This document shows, piece by piece, positions 1-14,999 of a stretch of 35,365 nt of DNA. Numbering within the stretch: the stretch's first letter is position 1; every line of letters starts with the position of its first letter. The stretch is from Vitrella brassicaformis CCMP3155 (Eukaryota > Protista > Chromerida). Both the position numbers and the translations under genes were made by a program. The stretch covers positions 1 to 35,365 of the forward strand of contig CDMY01000660.1 in assembly GCA_001179505.1 (NCBI GenBank), given 5' to 3'. The notes beneath the pieces were generated by a model, which made no database searches, was not told the DNA's origin, and saw nothing but the letters and a program-made list of their open reading frames with translations.

Positions 1-1257
1 GTGGTGGGGGGCGAGGGGCAGCAGACGGGCGAGAAGCCTCGAGTGGTCGCGCTGGGGGGCGAGGGCGGCATTGATGGCCGACATGACGACCTCGGACAGC
101 TCACTCAGCACTATGGCGTACTCAGCCAGCACCAGGTGACGATGACGGCCGTCCCTCTCGGTTGCTGTGGGTATGCGGGCGATGGATGGGGCCGCACCGC
201 TCCGCAGCAGCACACGGATGGTGGTCTTGTGCTGGCGGATCCGTCTTGAGTGCCACTCGCCCAGCGCTTCTCCCTGTCCATGCTGCTGCTGCTGCTGCTG
301 TTGGATGACGATTCTGAGCATCTCGGCAGCGACGGCGAGTGGTGTCCGATGAGGCTGGGGGGGCCTTCCTCGGTTGATGTCATCGGCTGTGATCCGGCGG
401 CACAGCCACTCAGCCAAGATGGCGGAGCCAGCTTTTGCTGCCAAGTGCAGTGGCGTGTAGCCGATGGTGTCTCTTGCCGTCATGTCGGCTCCGTGGCTGG
501 TGATGAGGGTGAGGTACTGATCGATGAATTGCTGGGAGAAGGTGGAGGGGGCGGTGGCTGCCAAATGGAGCAGACTGTCTCCAGCAGCGGACCGTTCGGC
601 TGCGAGAGTGCTGTCGTGTTGGATCAGCCTGCGATAGATGGACATGAGGGCAGCCTCGTACTCACGAGTGGGTGGAGGGGCAGCACCACCGACGCAGGGA
701 AGCTCCATCACCGGGCCCCAAATTCCCCGCACGTCGGCCTGACGCGCCAGGAGGACCTCCACAGCCGTCATATTGCCCGCACCAACCGCCACTCTGATGG
801 GCCTGTCCACCCCCATCAGCTCGCACCCGCCGCCATTGATGTCCGCCCCGCCGTCGATGAGTGCACTGAGGATGTCACGCTGCAGCTGAAGGGAGGACCA
901 CTGTGGCGGGACGACGGGCACCTGGGAGTTATCAGCGCCGCGCGCACGGAGGAATGGATAGTTTATTGGGCTGTCGATTGCGAAAGACAGGCAGCTGTAT
1001 CGCCAGCGCCAGTAAGGGGGTCCTGTGGCGCCGCGGACAAGAAGGGCGCCGATGGCTCTCGGGTTGGCTCCTTGCTCGATCAGCTGTGTAACTTGGCTGA
1101 CGTGAGTGAAGCTGCGGCGAGCGCAGCCCTCCAACAGCTGCCGACTCACAGCACTCACGCCCGGACTAGGAATAATGATGTCGACGTCGTCCAGCCCCTT
1201 ACAGCCGGGCGGCAGAGGAGGAGGTCCTTGTGATGCGGCAGAGGACGATTGGGCCAT
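1..1257 (-). CDS. Intronless ankyrin-repeat protein of a lineage-expanded family, copy 1 (3' end beyond window)
   Basis: Manual minus-strand translation from ATG 1257 gives MAQSSSAASQGPPPLPPGCKGLDDVDII..., including a canonical ankyrin-like segment DTIGYTPLHLAAKAGSAILAEWL and a polyQ tract. The frame stays open to base 1, so it is absent from the ORF track. It is colinear with the ORF at 5715..7286. Confidence 0.85.
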   Translation of the reverse strand, partial: MAQSSSAASQGPPPLPPGCKGLDDVDIIIPSPGVSAVSRQLLEGCARRSFTHVSQVTQLIEQGANPRAIGALLVRGATGPPYWRWRYSCLSFAIDSPINYPFLRARGADNSQVPVVPPQWSSLQLQRDILSALIDGGADINGGGCELMGVDRPIRVAVGAGNMTAVEVLLARQADVRGIWGPVMELPCVGGAAPPPTREYEAALMSIYRRLIQHDSTLAAERSAAGDSLLHLAATAPSTFSQQFIDQYLTLITSHGADMTARDTIGYTPLHLAAKAGSAILAEWLCRRITADDINRGRPPQPHRTPLAVAAEMLRIVIQQQQQQQHGQGEALGEWHSRRIRQHKTTIRVLLRSGAAPSIARIPTATERDGRHRHLVLAEYAIVLSELSEVVMSAINAALAPQRDHSRLLARLLPLAPHH

Positions 1258-1600
1258 TACAATGAGTCACAGCCCTGCACATACACATACACACAGACTC
1301 ACACGGTCACTTGCAAATCCTTCCTCCTTCCAACGTTGCTGGCGCACCTGCTCAGTCAGTCGGCGGCCGCCACAGCGAAGCCATTGACGGCACCTGCAGT
1401 GAGAACACACCGAGAGATGCCACCCAGCCAGTGGTGCTTTGCTTTTCCGTCACATGCCCTTCATCGGTCCATTCATACCATCAGCAGGTGAATCGGCAGC
1501 CCAAGCAGACTCCAAAGACAAACGCTGCTTCTCCGTTTGCTGCTTCACAGACGGGGCAACATCTGACAAAGCGGCAAACAGGGAGGTCACGCCTGTTCGG
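1258..1600 (-). promoter_or_regulatory. Upstream/5'UTR blocks shared with ankyrin paralog 2
   Basis: Blocks such as CCTTCCAACGxTGCTGGCGCACCTGxTCAGTCAGTCG, GTGGTGCTTxGCTTTTCCxTCACA and ACAGGGAGGTCACGC recur in the same order at about 7284..7497. Function is inferred only. Confidence 0.45.
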
Positions 1601-2140
1601 TTTTTTCGTTTGATTGCTTCCTTACAGTGTCTGCTGACGTGGACAAGCTGTGAAAGAGCCGTTTTGCTCCGCTTTCTGCCTCTGCCCACACCTTTTCTGC
1701 CTCTGCCGCCTGCGAGCTTGGTGGCGCGCAAGACGTGTTCATCCAGAAAGGAAAGAAAGGTCAACCGCGGCCTCCCGCCTGCTGCTCCATCCATAGCAAC
1801 TCATGAAGGTAGGTTCCAACCGCGACAGAACAAGAGGGTTGTCTCCCCTTTCATGTATCTACTTCTTCAATTGTTAACACAAGAGAGAGAAGCAATCGCT
1901 TTAGATCTTTCATTGGTTTGCAGGCGTGTTGTGAAGCCGACGAGAATGCCGGCAAGCGGCCTCGTGTGGACACTTATGACTCATCGCTCGCTGCTGCTGG
2001 AGGTGGGAAGAGGGACCCGTGAAGGGAACAGATCAGACTCACTCATGGCCGGCTGCCTTCCTTGTGTGATGCTCTCTCTCTCTGATGGCGGATGTGGCAC
2101 TGGTGCAGCTGTAGATGGAGGTCAGCAGTTGGACCAACAG

Positions 2141-5034
2141 ATGCGGCCCGTCATAGACTGGGTCAGCGACAGAGCCACCTGAATGGACGACACACGCAGG
2201 CACACTTGTTGGCTATGTGTATGCCCGTGTGTTCATTCATTCCGTCAGACTGACAAGGCGAATGTCCGCGGGCTGATCCCTCTGTTAAAGAAGGTCAAAT
2301 CGCTCGGGGCGCAGACGGCGGCCGTGCTGTCAGAGGTGCGACCATACGTCACCCCCACACTGGCCGACAAGGTACACACACACACGTATGCGCCCATCTC
2401 CCTCTGTCTGTGAGTGCTGATGTGTGTGTTGGCAGGTGCCGGGCCTGTCGAGTAATCTTCAGACGTTGGAGCAGTCAGTCGCGTGGCGATATGACACGCT
2501 AAGGGGTCTCATCAAGACACTCGACAGCGTGGCAGTCGCCAAGCCGCCACTCCCTCAGCCCATCGCCAAGAAACCCCTCCCGCCAGACGCCAAAATATCT
2601 CAGGCACGCCACAGATCAGCCCAAACATCCACACACACGACATGTGTGCCCCTGTGTGTGTGGTCAGCTCGGTCGTCCGTGTCTGGACGGCCTGCCGCCC
2701 GACGTGGCGCACATTGTGTTGGCCTTCCTGCCCACCAAAGACGCCGCGCCCCTCTCACGCGCCAACCGACCGATGAAATATCGCGTCATCGACGACACAA
2801 GAGGCGTGTACCGCCACTTGGTCATTGGTGTGGACGAGCGAGAGTGGTGGGATAAGGGCATTCGGAGGAACGCCGGGCGGACACTCGAGGACATCGGTAT
2901 CCATGGCGACATGAGGAGCGAGGAGAATGAAGAGCAGCGGGAGGGAAACGATAATAAGGGGGAGGGCGACGGGGCGGACATCAGACGGCAGAGAGAGAAC
3001 GAGACGCTCAACAACCTGAAGCAGAAACTGGTGGGTGGGTGGGCGGGCGAGGACAGAACACCAACTGACATGCTATGTGTCTGTCTCTTTGCAGAGTCGG
3101 TTGCGAACAGTACACATCAGCAGTCACTGGAGGGCCCTCTCCTTCCCTCTCGAGTGCATCTCACGACACCATCAAGCGCATGAAGCTCTGCGACACCACG
3201 GGCTACCCCTTCAGCGTGCCGACATCGCCGGCCACTGTGGCCTTCTCGCAGCTGGAGGAGCTCTACATCGAACCCTGGCCACATGGGTAAGCATCAGTGT
3301 TCCTATGGTCACACCCAAGATGTGTCCTGTGACATGCGTGTGTGTGTGCGTGTGTGTGTAGCTTGGGTCTCTTCACGCGCAGAGGAGGGTGGCAGTTTCC
3401 ATCTCTTCTTTACCTGCGAGTTGGGAATCGAGGCCTTTATGACCATGGTGTTAGGCTCATCCTGGAGCGTGCCCCCAAGCTAAAGTTTCTGTGTAGCAAT
3501 CACACCTCTTACATGCAGCCGCTGCATGCTGCTGGAGTAATTCTGTATCCCTCCTTCTTGTTTGCAGCGATCGAGCAGCTGAGAATCACCGATCGTGAGC
3601 AGGATGAGACCTCCGTCAGGCCGAACTGCCCGCACCTCACCACCATCGAGTGGGTTCAGCTCAGAGACAGCCATTGGGGCATGGCGCGGGACTTGGGCGA
3701 GCTGAAGCGTGCTCTCGATGCGATCTGGGGGAAGGCCAGCATGCCAGGTGAGTGAGCCAGGGGGTGGGTGAGCCAGCGAGCCAGAACAGACTTGCTGAGT
3801 TGCGTTTGTGTCTCGCTGCCGGGCAGGAGTCGAGAAGAGGCTGGGCCTGCGGTGCGCTGAGGGCTTCTCGTCGCCCTTCGTGGTGCCCTTGGCCAGTGAG
3901 CTGCTCCATCCCACAGACTCTGATGCTATCGGCCTTCCAGACTTCCTCGACTGGGCATGTAAGTTGGTTGGTACAACAAAGCGACAAGTGGAGGACTGGA
4001 GAATTGGAATGCTTAGCATCTCTCTGTTGTGTGGGTGTCTGCAAGCGTCGGTGAAGTGCACGGTCGAGTGGACGGCGCGTGAGGTGGTTGTGGACTGCTC
4101 CAGGGACCTCGTCATTTCGCCTCCTGCACCCACTGGCCCCATCGCCAAAATGATCAAAGACATCAGCAGCACGGCCGATAAGGTAAGCAGCGCAGTAAGA
4201 CAAGAGGCCTCCAAGAGACGAACATTCACTTCTGCTCCCTGTCTGTCTGCCTGGATGCAGGTGACTCTGCGGTGTGGCGGGAAGCCTCTGGACCAGTCTT
4301 GGGCCGGCCTGCTTTCTTTCACAAAGGCCACCACGCTATCGGTGAAGGGGCTGGGGTCGTCTCGGACCCTTTCGAGTGTGCCCCAGTGGATGGCAGCAAA
4401 GAGCGAGACCACCGGTGGCAATCGCCACCTGCCCAACATCACCAGCCTCAACCTCACAGGGGGCGACGGCTATCGGAAGCTGTGTGGTGACGTGCGTGCA
4501 GGGCTTGATGGCCTGGGTGCGTTGCTGGGCACATTAGACAGGCTCACGACAGTCAGTCTGACCCGTTTGCCGAACCTGGGTATGGCATCGTTTTGCCTGT
4601 CGCAGCTGCCCCCCACTGTCGAGCTAGAGAGTGTGTGTGTGGAGGCATCAGTGTGTCGCTCAGGGGTGCCCACCATCTCTGACTCTGCCCGATACCCTCA
4701 CATCGCCTCGCTAAGTGTCGAAGTGATCGATAGCGGCACGATAGATGAGGTTGCGTCTGGCGTAGCCTTTGCCTCTGCTCTGCGGCCGGCAACCGTCTCT
4801 CTGGAAGCGTGCGGCCGTCTGAGTGCTCTGCACAATCGGGAAGGGGGTGAGAGCAGAGAGGCTTATTGCCGTTCCGTAGTCGAGCAGTGCATTGATCAGG
4901 CAGAGGAAGCCCACTATGGGCTGCTTGCCGATGAGAGCAAGCCGATTGAAGAAGACGAGGAAGGGTTCTACGAGGAGGAAGTGGGTTACTTCTCTAGTGT
5001 AGTGCTGAAGGTGGCGCGGCTGCCATCTGTTTAG
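2141..5034 (+). CDS. Multi-exon F-box domain protein (lineage-specific; start uncertain)
   Basis: Spliceable exons join in frame (introns 2162-2248, 2372-2435, 2604-2667 and others). The motif LDGLPPDVAHIVLAFLPTKDAAPLSRAN near 2683-2766 fits the F-box consensus. There is a long terminal coding block with LRR-like LxxLxL segments, ending at TAG 5034. Confidence 0.65.
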
Positions 5035-5552
5035 CCTCTCCTGGGTGTAAACATACACACACCTCTAGCTACCTGGCTGGCTGCATGGTGATATGATAGA
5101 TAGACAAATGCGGGAGGGGAGGGCGTGGGTGCTGCATGCTGCCGACGCCGTCAATGCATGTCTGTCTTTAATTCACAGCTGAATTGATCTATCTCATGCT
5201 CTTCGCTTCTCAACCACAGTGCGATGTGATGAGCGTGATCCCGCGTGTCGTGCACTGCCCGTAAGGACCATTACGTGAGTGCAATGGCGCGGGTTCAATC
5301 AAGCGTAGTACGGATGAATGAATGTGGGTCGACCCAAAAGCTACGACCGGCGCAAGAGACGCTTCTGTCTCTTCGTGAGGCCACGCAAAAGAAAGACACA
5401 TTTGAAATGAATAAAGTCAGTGCTGTCTGCATCCACACACCAAGCACGGCGAGACTCGCCAACATAACTGTCATAAAACTGGTACAAAGGAGTGAAATAT
5501 ACAGTCACTTTCACCCCCCGACACTGAAGTTCTCTCCCCGTTTCCCTCTCAC

Positions 5553-7283
5553 TCATTCGATGCCCAGCGGCATAAAGAGGCCGGTCCTCGACAGATGCCC
5601 AGCTGGCCCCACGCGAACTGGCAGTCCTGATCGCCCAGATGCTCGTTGAAGCCCTTGACCACACCATGCACGCCATGCAGTGCCGCCTCGTCCAGCCGGG
5701 CCCGGTGCACCACCTCACGCACACCCACCAGGCGGGGCCCCACACCATGGCTGCCCCTCACGGCGAAGCACTGCAGCGGCGGGACGGTCACCTTGACGCG
5801 CTTGTCGCCCTGCTGCTGGTATCGCGTCCCGCCCACCACCTCCCTGTTGCTGCTCGTCTGGGTGGGCCGCCGACTTGACGAAGTGGCCGACGGCCGCACC
5901 CACGCGGCGCCTCAGCAGCGACTCGCCAATGAGGTACTGGTTGATGGCGGCCACAGCAGCGGGGGGCTCGTGCAGGAAGGCGCCGATCTTCCATCCGATG
6001 GCCTCAGCCTCGTGTGGGCCGAATGCCATGTTGGATGGGGAGGGGTGGGGGTGGGCGCCGTCGTGGTGGGGGGCGAGGGGCAGCAGACGGGCGAGAAGCA
6101 GCGAGTGGTCGCGCTGGGGGGCGAGGGCGCCGTTGATGGCCGACATGACGACCTCCGACAGCTCATTCAGCACTGTGGCGTACTCGGCCAGGACCAGGTG
6201 ACGATGACGGCGCTGGTCGGTTGCGGTGGGCAGGCGGGCAATCGATGGGGCCGCCCCGCCCCGCAGCAGCACACCGATGATGGTCTTGTACTGGCGGATC
6301 CATCTTGAGTGCTCCTCGCCCTGCTGCTGCTGTTGCTGGATGTGGCGATTGAGCCAGTCGGCAGCGACGGCGAGGGGTGTGTGGTTTGGCTGATTCGTCA
6401 TGCCTCTGTTGACGTTGTCGGCTGTGAGATGGCGGCACAGCCAATGAGCTACACAGGGAGAGTTACGCAATGCTGCCAACTGTAGTGGCGGGATGGCCCT
6501 GTTGTCTGCTGCCGTCATATCGGCTCGGTGGCTGGTGATGAGGGTGAGGTACTGGTCGATGAAGGACTGGGAGAAGAAGCTCGAAGGGGCCATGGCTGCC
6601 AAATTCACCAGACTGTCTCCACCGGGCCCGCCCCGCTCAGCTGCGAGTGTGCTGTCGTGTTGGAGGAGCCGACGGAAGACAGAGATGGTGGCGTCCTCGT
6701 ACTCACGGGTGGCGGAAGGGGCGGCACCACCGACGTAGGGAAGCCGCATCACAGCAAATCCACGCACGTCGACCTGTCGCGCCAGGAGGACCTCCACAGC
6801 CGTCAGATTGCCCGCACGAATCGCCACCATGATGGGCGTGCTAGACCCTCCGCCTCCACCCGCATTGACGTCCGCCCCGCCGTCGATGAGTGCATTGAGG
6901 ATGTCATGCTGCAGCTGACGGGAAGACCACTGCGGCAGGACCACCGGCACGGAGCCATAGGCGCCGCTCTGCGCAGAGAAGGATAGGCTGTCTGTTGGGC
7001 TGTCGATGGCGAAAGACAGACATCTGTATCGCCAGTACGGGTCGTCTGTGGTGCCGCGGACGCGCAGGCCGCCGACAGCTCTCGGGTCAGCTCCTTGACG
7101 TATCAGCTGTGTGACTTGGGCGGCCTCCGTCACGGTGCGGCGAATGCAGCCCTCCAGCAGCTGGCGAGTTACAACACTGACGCCCTCATCGGGGACGATG
7201 TCGACGTCGTCCAGCCCCTTGCAGCCGTGTGGCGGCACAGCCGGAGGAGGTGCTTGTGATGCGGCAGACGACAATTGGGCCAT
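5553..7283 (-). pseudogene. Intronless ankyrin-repeat family protein, copy 2, with apparent +1 and -1 frameshifts near the 3' end (pseudogene or sequence error)
   Basis: ATG at 7283, colinear with copy 1. After ...HFVKSAA the main frame becomes nonsense-like and stops at 5715, while plausible protein (TQTSSNREVVGG...EAALHGVHGVVKGFNEHLGDQDCQFAW) continues in another frame (ORF 5549..5899). The original frame resumes as HLSRTGLFMPLGIE* ending at 5553. Confidence 0.6.
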
Positions 7284-7497
7284 CACAATGAGTCACACCA
7301 CTGCACAAACATTGACAGGCACACACAGTCCTTGCAAGCCTTCTTCCTTCCAACGCTGCTGGCGCACCTGGTCAGTCAGTCGACGGCCGGTGGTGCTTGG
7401 CTTTTCCATCACAGTGAATCAGCTTCACCATCCGCTTCTCAACTCAACAGGGCTCAACACGGCTCGACCAACAGGGAGGTCACGCAGGCTCGGCTCC
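7284..7497 (-). promoter_or_regulatory. Upstream/5'UTR blocks shared with ankyrin paralog 1
   Basis: Visual alignment to 1258..1600; see that feature. Confidence 0.45.
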
Positions 7498-11586: not shown

Positions 11587-14500
11587 ATGACGTCCGTCAC
11601 GCGCTTCCCCTCCTCATTTTTCCTCCCCGCCCTCGCCCTCGGCTGCCTGGCCCTCCTCGCCTCCCTCTCTCTTGCCGACAAGCCCCCTGCCAACCTCAGG
11701 GAGCTCACCTTTGGCCACGACAAGAAGGCTGACCAGAAGCCGCCACAGGAGCACAACGGCAAGGACAAGGAGCAGAACCAGGAGGAGAAGCCGGAGGAGC
11801 CGAAGCCGGAGGCGCCGCCCAAGGCCGATGACGACAGCGAGGCCAACGGCGGGTGCTTCAGCGCGGTGGAGACACCACAGTTTGAGGTGGCCGAGTGCTC
11901 CGAGGCCGACCGTCAGTTCACCGTGAGCAAACCCGACGACTACAAGAGCGGCGAGGACGCCATCGAGGGCTCCCTCCGCGAGCAGCTCGACAAGGTCAGC
12001 AAGGCCGAGGGCAAGGGTCTCTTCTGTGTCTGCCTCGACTTTGCCGGGGACGCCACGATCAAGGCGCTCGAGAAGTTCGAGCTCAACGTCGACGACAAGG
12101 AGGTCATCCTCAGGACACCGGGCGGCTCCAAGGCAGCCGTCACGGTGAGCGCGGCTGAGATCACCGACGGCGCGGCCTTCGAGATCACCGTCACCAACAA
12201 TGGCGTCCTCACCTTCGGAGGGTACGCACGCTCACATCTCACGACACACACAGGGGAAGGGACGGAGGGAGGGAGGGAGGGTGAGGTTGTGACGCCGTGC
12301 TCACTGTTGTGCTGTGTGTGTCTTGTCTGGTGTGGTGTGGTCTGGTGTGGTGTGGCGGTGTGCAGGTTCACTGTTGCTGACAAGGACGGCCTGGAGGCCT
12401 CAGCGCTCGCCGTGGAGGGCGACGGTCTCTTCCAGACCTACGGCATGAGGTTCACGGGCAACCGCGCCATCCGGGGCGGCTCCATCTCCCTCATCGAGAC
12501 CGGCTACCTCGACTACGGCAGCACCTTCAGCAACAACGAGGTCACCACCGTGGGTGCGGCCATCTACGCCCAGTCGGTCGACAAGATGGCCATGGAGGGC
12601 TCCACCCTCACCGACAACAGGGCCGGTGGCTCGGGTGGCGGCATCTACGTCTTCAACACAAAGTATGAGCTGGTCAACACCAAGTTCGTCAAGAACATCG
12701 CTGGGGGCAAGGGCGGCGCCATGGCCGACTTCTCCTCGGGCACCTCGCAGATCGGACAGCCGGGCTACCTCAAGGACGTCACCGTTGCCGACAACGAAGG
12801 TACGTGGGTGGTGGGGTGGCTAGGGACACAACAACACACCATGCTCATGCCTCGTGTGTGTGTGTGTGTGTGGTGTGGTTGTCTTGTCTGTGTGCAGGTG
12901 GTGGTGTGTACAAGTTCGGTGGCGCCAAGCAGCTGACTGTCAACAGCACCACGTTCAGCAACAACAAGGCCAACGACGGTGACGGCACCGGCGCACTCGT
13001 CGTCGAGGGCGGCGCCAGCCAGCTCACAAAGGCCCTCCAGGTCGTGCTCAGCACCTTCGCCGGCAACGAGGGAGGCGCCATCAAAAGTACACACCACACC
13101 CCACACGAACCGATGCACGCACACACACCTGCCTGGATGCCTGTTTCTGCTTGCCTTGTGTGTGTGTGTGTGTGTGGTGTGTATCAGCCATCCGGACCAC
13201 TGCGTCAGTGATAGCGTCGACCATCACCAACAACGAGGGGCCCGCCGTGTCCGCCGAGGCAGGAGAGATAGTCCTCGAGAGCACGTGAGAACAGCACACC
13301 CAACACACACACACCAGCCCCCCACTAGTGGCCATCTCATTCGCCCGTGTGTGTGTGTGTGTGTGTCCTCTCCCTCCTCTCCCTCTCTGCCTGCCTGCCT
13401 GCCTGCCTGCCTGTGTGCCTTCCTTCAGGATCAACATAGACAACATTGACAACATGGACTGTGCGGTCAACAGCTCGAGCACCATCAGCATGTTCGGCGT
13501 CAACATGTTCCGCGCCAACGGCAACTGCGAGGACAACGGGTTCAACAACGTCGTCCTCGGCGACAAGGACAAGGCCTGCCTCGGCGACCTCTCCGACATG
13601 GAGGGCGTCTCCGTCCAGGTCGTCCCTCTCGACACCTGCTCACCCGCCATCAACGCCGGAGACGTCATCCCTCTCGAGGAGCTCCCATTGGACGTCGCGG
13701 GCCAGGTCAGGGGCGGCAGCCCCGATATCGGTGCCGTCGAGTCCGACAAGGAGGACGACAGCCCCAAGCAGAAGCGCGACGACAAGGGCAAGGGCAAGCC
13801 AAAGCAGGAGCCAAAGGAGGATGACGAGAAGCCCGAAGACGAGCAGCCAGAAGAGGACGAGCAGCCCAAGGAGAACGATGACGGCGAGAAGAAGTCACCG
13901 CCCAAGAAGCGTGACGACGACAAGAAGCCCAGCGACGAGGGCGACGAGCCCGAGTGCGATGTCCCCAAGTGCGGCAAGCCGCCTGTGGATGATGAGGATG
14001 AGGAGGACGAGCTGCCCAGTGAGGAACCCGACTTGCGTGATCCCGACGACGACGAGGAGGACACCGGGGTGAGTAGTGAGACAACACGGGCGGGTTGTGG
14101 CCAGGGTTGCGTGTGCCATGCTGGATGGGTGTCTTCACACCTCACTGACACGCCTTTCTGGCTGGCTCTCTGCCTATTGTGTTTTGTGTGTGCAGCCCAA
14201 AAAAACCACCACCACCACTACCAAGAAGCCCCCCAAAACCACCACCACCACCACTACCAAGAAGCCCCCAACCACCACCACCACCACCACCACCACCAAG
14301 GCGCCACCAACGGAGCCACCAAAGAAGTGCGCGGCGTACATTGGCATAGAGTACGGCAAGAAGGGCACATTCAAGGCCAAGGAGCTCTTCCCCGCCCTCG
14401 TGGGCAAGACTCTCGTCAAGTGCAAAATCACCGGAGGATACTTCCCGTAAGACAACAGACACAAGACACACCGGACAGACAGACAAGACAATCACCGCAC

Positions 14501-14999
14501 ACGCCCATCCTCTCTCCCCCTTCCCCCTCTCTCTGTTGTGTGGTTGGTTGGTGTGCGCAGGACTGAGAGACGTGAGCTGACCTACGGCTCGTACAAGCAC
14601 TACAAGCACGGCGGCCACTTCCTGTCGCGCGGCTACCACAAGAACAACTACTACTACAGCCAACCGGCCGCCCCCGCCCCCAGCTACAAGTCTCTCTCCG
14701 TGACGTGTGGCGGCGAGTACGTGAGCTGGGACTGCGCCGACTACAAGAGCACCTACGTGTTCGTGCTGACCTACCATTACTACATGGGGGAGCGGCTGAG
14801 GCAGCTCACGTGGGGCTATGGCAGCCATGGGTACCATTACAAGAAGCATCGCAAGCACGGCTACAGGAACAAGCACTACTACAAGAAGCACCACGGGTGG
14901 CACTACAAGCCCCACTATGGTGGCGGCTACTACTACCCACCCACACCCAGCTACCCCACCTACTCGGAGGACTGCCACGTCACCGTTGCTTGCGCCTGA
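11587..14999 (+). CDS. Secreted modular protein: signal peptide, right-handed beta-helix (Pmp-like GGAI/FxxN repeats), choice-of-anchor-Q-like motif, acidic and Thr-rich linkers, Tyr/His/Lys-rich C-terminus
   Basis: Hydrophobic leader FFLPALALGCLALLASLSLA. Exons join in frame: 11587-12221, 12366-12799, 12898-13086, about 13188-13284, about 13430-14068, about 14196-14447 and 14561-14999. Motifs include FSNN, GGGIY, GGAMA, GGAIK and CSPAINAG...DVAGQVR...DIGAVE. Confidence 0.8.
14196..14300 (+). repeat. Three degenerate ~36-bp (ACC)-rich units encoding a mucin-like PKKTTTTTTKKP linker
   Basis: The tandem units are visible. A phase-0 splice from 14068 to 14196 fixes the Thr-rich frame. Confidence 0.8.

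Follow-up and report, generated by a model that had tools for sequence, protein, structure and literature searches.

The window analyzed here is the entire 35,365-nucleotide scaffold CDMY01000660.1 (C660) of the chromerid Vitrella brassicaformis CCMP3155, and our subject is a gene on its forward strand (positions 11587–14999) whose 894-residue product carries three copies of the hexapeptide R-x-L-T-[FYW]-G. What is the function of these hexapeptides? In the account that we favor, though tentatively, they would be processing sites at which a 10-residue propeptide is removed and two Tyr/His-rich, Cys-looped tail peptides are released from an adhesin body. We infer cleavage, the identity of the protease, and a role in a wall or in cross-linking from the features described below. 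All genome-wide scans covered the 72,700,666-base, 1064-contig V. brassicaformis assembly (72.7 Mb).

Translation of the three stretches yields LRELTFG, RRELTYG and LRQLTWG, in agreement with the initial annotation, which had reported three such copies in one protein. The hexapeptides proper are RELTFG (motif 1, R38–G43, 11698–11715), RELTYG (motif 2, R753–G758, 14571–14588) and RQLTWG (motif 3, R829–G834, 14799–14816). Given the protein’s own composition, R-x-L-T-[FYW]-G is expected 8e-4 times per protein; the Poisson probability of three or more copies is 1e-10, falling to 1e-13 if x is limited to E or Q. This expectation, together with the genome counts reported below, rules out a chance origin of the three copies. 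Outside the motifs the protein has no R-x-L tripeptide; this tally alone is not significant, as 1.2 would be expected. Among the copies, third positions differ at four of the six codons, and the two halves of exon 7 gave no BLASTP alignment to each other (E = 22), which bears out the earlier statement that the motifs occur in otherwise unrelated contexts. Because the copies differ at synonymous sites and their flanks cannot be aligned, selection appears to act on the peptide and not on the DNA. A DNA- or RNA-level motif was also considered, as each copy includes a branch-point-like CTSAC; it was rejected, since the conserved bases are only those that the amino acids fix.

The gene comprises seven exons (11587–12221, 12366–12799, 12898–13086, 13188–13284, 13429–14068, 14196–14446 and 14561–14999) and ends with a TGA stop codon at 14997–14999. 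The six introns (12222–12365, 12800–12897, 13087–13187, 13285–13428, 14069–14195 and 14447–14560) all have GT-AG junctions. An exhaustive protein search recovered a public 894-residue protein from the same organism (P0001 hereafter; database title “unnamed protein product [Vitrella brassicaformis CCMP3155]”) that is identical to the product of this model. This record and natural transcript contigs were used for all whole-protein analyses. Indeed, the seven exons are found, exact and contiguous, in three intron-less public contigs (one from a Logan run and two from Joint Genome Institute assemblies). Transcription and splicing of the gene thus follow the model, which places the three motifs in one polypeptide. 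The Logan contig SRR646408_4185 (positions 1–5621), itself intron-less, joins a spliced upstream Kelch-repeat gene to the adhesin gene and to about 1.4 kb of sequence past the adhesin stop codon; it stems either from transcription (read-through or overlapping transcripts) or from a chimeric assembly. Each of the six introns is AC-rich near its donor and GT/TG-rich near its acceptor, such that the ends could pair. Exons 1, 2, 5 and 7 each match only themselves in the genome, and no paralog was found there.

The predicted protein begins with a signal peptide (residues 1–30, 11587–11676), which we assigned heuristically: Arg6 lies in the n-region, the hydrophobic core spans residues 10–29, hydropathy exceeds 2 over residues 13–29, small residues occupy positions –3 and –1, and the predicted signal-peptidase site falls between SLA and DK, after residue 30. 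By this heuristic, motif 1 starts eight residues past the predicted cleavage, as the initial annotation had it, “just after” the signal peptide. The intervening residues and the first half of the motif form the putative propeptide (residues 31–40, 11677–11706), which ends in R-E-L (residues 38–40). From residue 41 the sequence is rich in Lys; compositionally, residues 41–85 (11707–11841) constitute a K/E/P/D-rich linker. The body of the protein, a predicted beta-helix, follows (residues 86–585, 11842–13828, interrupted by introns 1–4). Its exon 2 portion contains Chlam_PMP repeats (PF02415, 1.7e-8, above the cut-off). The Beta_helix family listed in public records, PF13229, scored 2.5e-4, below its cut-off. 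Residues 503–557 (13580–13744) match the choice-of-anchor Q domain (NCBIfam NF041518, 9.6e-6, 25.8 bits vs. a cut-off of 25).

Downstream of the body, an acidic D/E/P-rich linker, defined by composition (residues 586–665, 13829–14068, isoelectric point (pI) 4.1), leads to a mucin-like Thr/Lys/Pro stalk (residues 666–709, 14196–14327), in which 23 of the 44 residues are Thr and which is encoded by a tandem repeat of 36–39 nucleotides. The next segment is basic and bounded by Cys710 and Cys741 (residues 710–755, 14328–14579, spanning intron 6); like the putative propeptide, it ends in R-E-L. The tail is then completed by two modules. Module A (residues 756–831, 14580–14807; 14 Tyr in 76 residues, pI 9.1) consists of a Y/H/K/G-rich stretch, a Pro-rich patch and a Cys798–Cys807 loop, and it ends in RQL. 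Module B (residues 832–894, 14808–14996; 13 Tyr and 10 His in 63 residues, pI 9.5) has the same three parts, its loop being the C-terminal Cys887–Cys893. Exon 7 starts four residues ahead of motif 2, and thus the tail is a single exon-defined cassette.

Every motif copy sits exactly at a change in composition, and the internal ones stand ahead of the basic Y/H/K-rich modules. The observation that each copy opens a distinct segment was thus upheld (K/E/P/D-rich for residues 41–85, Y/S/G/K/H-rich for 756–831, and Y/H/G/K-rich for 832–894). The mature protein would have 16 Cys residues, and the proposed cuts would apportion them 12/2/2, leaving an even number in each piece. The further suggestion of a secreted polyprotein stands in part. 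The layout is indeed that of a precursor, with a signal peptide, a short RxL-ended pro-segment, and motifs at the boundaries; “polyprotein,” however, is an overstatement, as about 80% of the chain is one adhesin-like body, from which just two small tail modules would be released.

How might such a protein mature? The gene would encode a secreted adhesin directed to a wall or matrix and composed of a bacterial-type Pmp/choice-of-anchor-Q beta-helix, the acidic linker, the Thr-rich stalk, and the two-module Tyr/His-rich tail. The R-x-L-T-aromatic-G copies would serve as endoproteolytic maturation sites that are read in the secretory pathway. Cleavage at site 1 would remove the 10-residue propeptide, and cleavage at sites 2 and 3 would free two basic peptides of 63–76 residues or render them releasable. 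The composition of the tail, Tyr/His-rich and Cys-looped, suggests that the freed peptides could function in cross-linking or in metal-mediated hardening of an extracellular layer. The scissile bond would be Leu–Thr if the enzyme belongs to the plasmepsin V clade and Thr–aromatic if it is an S1P-like subtilase. Splicing could also bear on the tail: the donor of intron 6 (14445–14449) reads CCG/GTAAGA, and retention places a TAA directly in frame. Retention of this intron alone would truncate the product immediately ahead of motif 2, with loss of the entire Tyr/His-rich tail.

Should the sites be cut, the protein would offer an expressed substrate for probing the role of a plasmepsin V/ASP5-type protease before parasitism, and it would help to explain how chromerids build resistant walls. 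The three sites also vary, both at P2 and in the aromatic residue, and so make up a small natural set of substrates on which the specificity of the Vitrella enzyme could be gauged. If no cutting occurs, the motif amounts to a structural element confined to one orphan protein, and its wider interest is slight.

Candidate proteases of both kinds were sought in the genome. About a dozen loci encode pepsin-family proteins. One of these, on the minus strand of contig C688 (G000:C688:132567–133730; also L022:1468–2631), matches the plasmepsin V structures 4zl4 and 8tyf at 4e-39, whereas the next family scores 3e-7. Both catalytic Asp motifs (DTGS and DSGG) and a Cys-rich insert are present; the open frame meets an intron right after the second motif. 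Another pepsin-family locus is of the generic cathepsin D/plasmepsin X type. The Vitrella genome thus encodes an enzyme of the plasmepsin V/ASP5 clade, and the search for such an ortholog that the initial annotation had proposed was successful. The second candidate is S1P/SKI-1, a Golgi subtilase that recognizes R-X-aliphatic-Z and cuts after it, where X is not P or C and Z is not V, P, C or E (PMC8310232). All three Vitrella sites (RELT, RELT and RQLT) conform to this rule, and a cut of the S1P type would also account for the conserved Thr. At least 35 subtilase (S8) loci are present in the genome.

A number of observations weigh against the processing account. The PEXEL rule is R-x-L-x-[E/Q/D] (PMC10900883, PMC4764566), and position 5 in the three Vitrella copies is F, Y and W. 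TgASP5 requires RRL, in which P3 and P2 are both Arg, and did not process a RELLD peptide (PMC4764566); the Vitrella sites are R-E-L, R-E-L and R-Q-L, such that P2 is never Arg. The motif therefore matches the known specificities of plasmepsin V and ASP5 at R and L only, and these specificities leave the conservation of T-aromatic-G past the RxL unexplained. The proposed link to the apicomplexan export and maturation motif is accordingly weak. For the subtilase alternative, the genome, whose S8 loci were not typed singly, yielded no match to PF23094 (MBTPS1_3rd) and no coding match to the S1P catalytic signature HGTFVAG, in searches whose sensitivity is lowered by exon splitting. No homolog found by HMMER or word searches spans the motif regions and could attest to their conservation. 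A single-sequence AlphaFold2 model had a mean pLDDT (predicted local distance difference test) of only 34; it was unusable and gave no reading of site accessibility. Finally, the protein has five occurrences of T-aromatic-G where 0.6 would be expected, and two of these copies fall within the beta-helix without an RxL. Part of the motif may thus reflect a structural preference of the protein.

The last point leads to the main rival explanation, which we consider less probable than processing while still giving it real weight. Here, the hexapeptide would be non-proteolytic, a short beta-strand/turn or docking motif (e.g., in binding to a peroxidase or a lectin, or in self-assembly) that opens each basic low-complexity segment; the protein would remain intact, and the tail would be a wall anchor that replaces the bacterial one. 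Besides the excess of T-aromatic-G, this idea draws on the L-T-F-G at residue 208, which lies inside the beta-helix and lacks the Arg, and on the related [ST]-[TK]-F-x-x-N strands used by the beta-helix rungs. Moreover, where a choice-of-anchor Q domain is present, an anchor module is expected to come after it. A hint of a partly folded tail came from an Atlas model of residues 706–894, whose Ig-like look-alikes reached template-modeling (TM) scores of only 0.32–0.43; these are below 0.45 and were not used, and TM scores under 0.5 carry no weight. Opposing this explanation, R and L recur at fixed spacing in all three copies but are absent from the T-aromatic-G sites of the beta-helix. In addition, what follows motif 1 is a K/E/P-rich linker, which is ruled out as an element of a fold, and no docking motif of this form is known.

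We regard it as unlikely that the copies are functionless relics of old internal duplications, in which unique sequence has changed more slowly than its slippage-prone flanks. The low-complexity flanks do contain short tandem DNA repeats, and modules A and B are laid out alike, the motif being followed in each by a Y/H-rich stretch, then a Pro-rich patch, then a Cys loop. Yet BLASTP found nothing else common to the two modules, and it is hard to see how five of six positions could be kept three times without selection. The synonymous differences among the copies, whose amino acids are kept, and the location of motif 1, far from the tail and in a compositionally different context, make this explanation the less likely.

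Is the hexapeptide a genome-wide signal? The initial annotation had proposed a scan for its enrichment among secreted proteins. In all six frames of the assembly, a degenerate nucleotide pattern covering R-[EQ]-L-T-[FYW]-G produced 49 matches compared with 67 for the reversed control; with any residue at x, the figures were 714 and 1044, respectively. True R[EQ]LT[FYW]G peptides are encoded by 15 of the 49 matches, and three of the 15 are those of the adhesin gene. At the remaining 12 exact sites, no Tyr/His-rich surroundings and no signal peptide are evident, and in 11 cases the frame is riddled with stops. With counts under the reversed controls and no other secreted-looking gene carrying the hexapeptide, the notion of a genome-wide signal was rejected. 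By these counts, the six-residue motif is private to this gene, with no secretome-wide signal. The presence of a plasmepsin V-clade protease speaks for the six-residue form as a code by which Vitrella secreted proteins are generally exported or matured, a free-living counterpart of PEXEL/TEXEL, but the rarity of the pattern relative to its controls and the contexts of the other 12 sites render such a code extremely improbable. A further conjecture is that the hexapeptide is a chromerid maturation code of an ancestral plasmepsin V/ASP5 whose pre-parasitic job was the cutting of Tyr/His-rich, Cys-looped wall blocks, which in this gene would have been grafted onto a bacterially derived adhesin. 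Wall-building would in that case be the source of PEXEL/TEXEL export in parasites. We judge this quite improbable.

Relatives of the protein were sought with an exhaustive HMMER search of 1.84 billion representative proteins, for which the query was exon 1, the in-frame intron 1, and exon 2. Only P0001 itself scored below 1e-30. About 1500 weaker matches cover just the Chlam_PMP exon at approximately 30% identity; the closest of them to bear a name comes from the planctomycete Gimesia aquarii and is a choice-of-anchor Q/“PmpC precursor” protein. One protein from the green alga Bryopsis is among the top matches to the body. The pattern R-x-L-[ST]-[FYW]-G is absent from all 149 of the nearest relatives. 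Word searches returned no relatives for exon 7 and only P0001 itself for its residues 700–894. A bacterial-type Pmp/choice-of-anchor Q beta-helix in a six-intron, paralog-free eukaryotic gene points to a possible old gene transfer.

Three other functions for the hexapeptides were examined and set aside. Plastid targeting, with the aromatic residue at a new N-terminus, is at odds with the highly acidic segment that follows and with the adhesin body. An oomycete-type RxLR signal was dismissed because no R-x-L-R occurs near the signal peptide. An N-terminal Cu/Ni-binding motif (X-X-His) exposed by cleavage would suit site 1 only. The neighboring genes were uninformative for the gene studied here. 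A long open frame on the minus strand (5715–7286) contains ankyrin repeats (Ank_2, 5e-8); nine other long frames of the scaffold had no match when scanned against Pfam.

How do the Vitrella sites compare with those of known systems? Like PEXEL and TEXEL, they have R at P3 and L at P1; site 1 follows closely on the signal peptide and sites 2 and 3 are internal, an arrangement that TEXEL shows too. They differ in having an aromatic residue at P2' and E or Q at P2, and Vitrella is free-living, with no host cell into which proteins could be exported. The resemblance to S1P/SKI-1 sites extends to position Z: proBDNF is cut by this enzyme at RGLT↓SL (PMC8310232), and Z is Thr in the Vitrella sites exactly as it is there. 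In contrast, the conserved aromatic-Gly on the prime side of the Vitrella sites falls outside the S1P rule, and searches of the genome for an S1P ortholog, by domain and by catalytic signature, came up empty.

With bacterial Pmp-like and choice-of-anchor Q surface proteins, the Vitrella protein shares Chlam_PMP repeats, a right-handed beta-helix and the choice-of-anchor Q domain. Unlike them, its gene has six spliceosomal introns, and the identity of about 30% is limited to one exon. The bacterial C-terminal anchor is replaced by the acidic linker, the mucin stalk and the Tyr/His tail.

Diatom precursors of the RXL/silaffin type have an RXL domain that follows the signal peptide and is removed by an unknown protease (PMC5525289). 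The Vitrella protein resembles them in its signal peptide, in its short segment ending in R-x-L before a basic low-complexity region, and in the internal RxL sequences that fence off peptides. It has no sequence homology to them, comes from an alveolate, and extends the motif by T-aromatic-G; furthermore, the parts that it would release are Tyr/His-rich and not Lys/Ser-rich, and most of it is predicted to be a folded beta-helix.

The Eimeria proteins GAM56 and GAM82 provide Tyr-rich peptides that are released by proteases and cross-linked into the resistant oocyst wall, the cutting of GAM56 being serine-protease-dependent (PMC3770453). Word searches detected no homology between these proteins and that of Vitrella, in which Tyr-rich sequence makes up just a small tail attached to an adhesin. 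To our knowledge, the processing sites of GAM56 are not defined by RxL. Nonetheless, GAM56 and GAM82 are secreted precursors of Tyr-rich peptides from a sister lineage, and they resemble the Vitrella tail, although in composition only.

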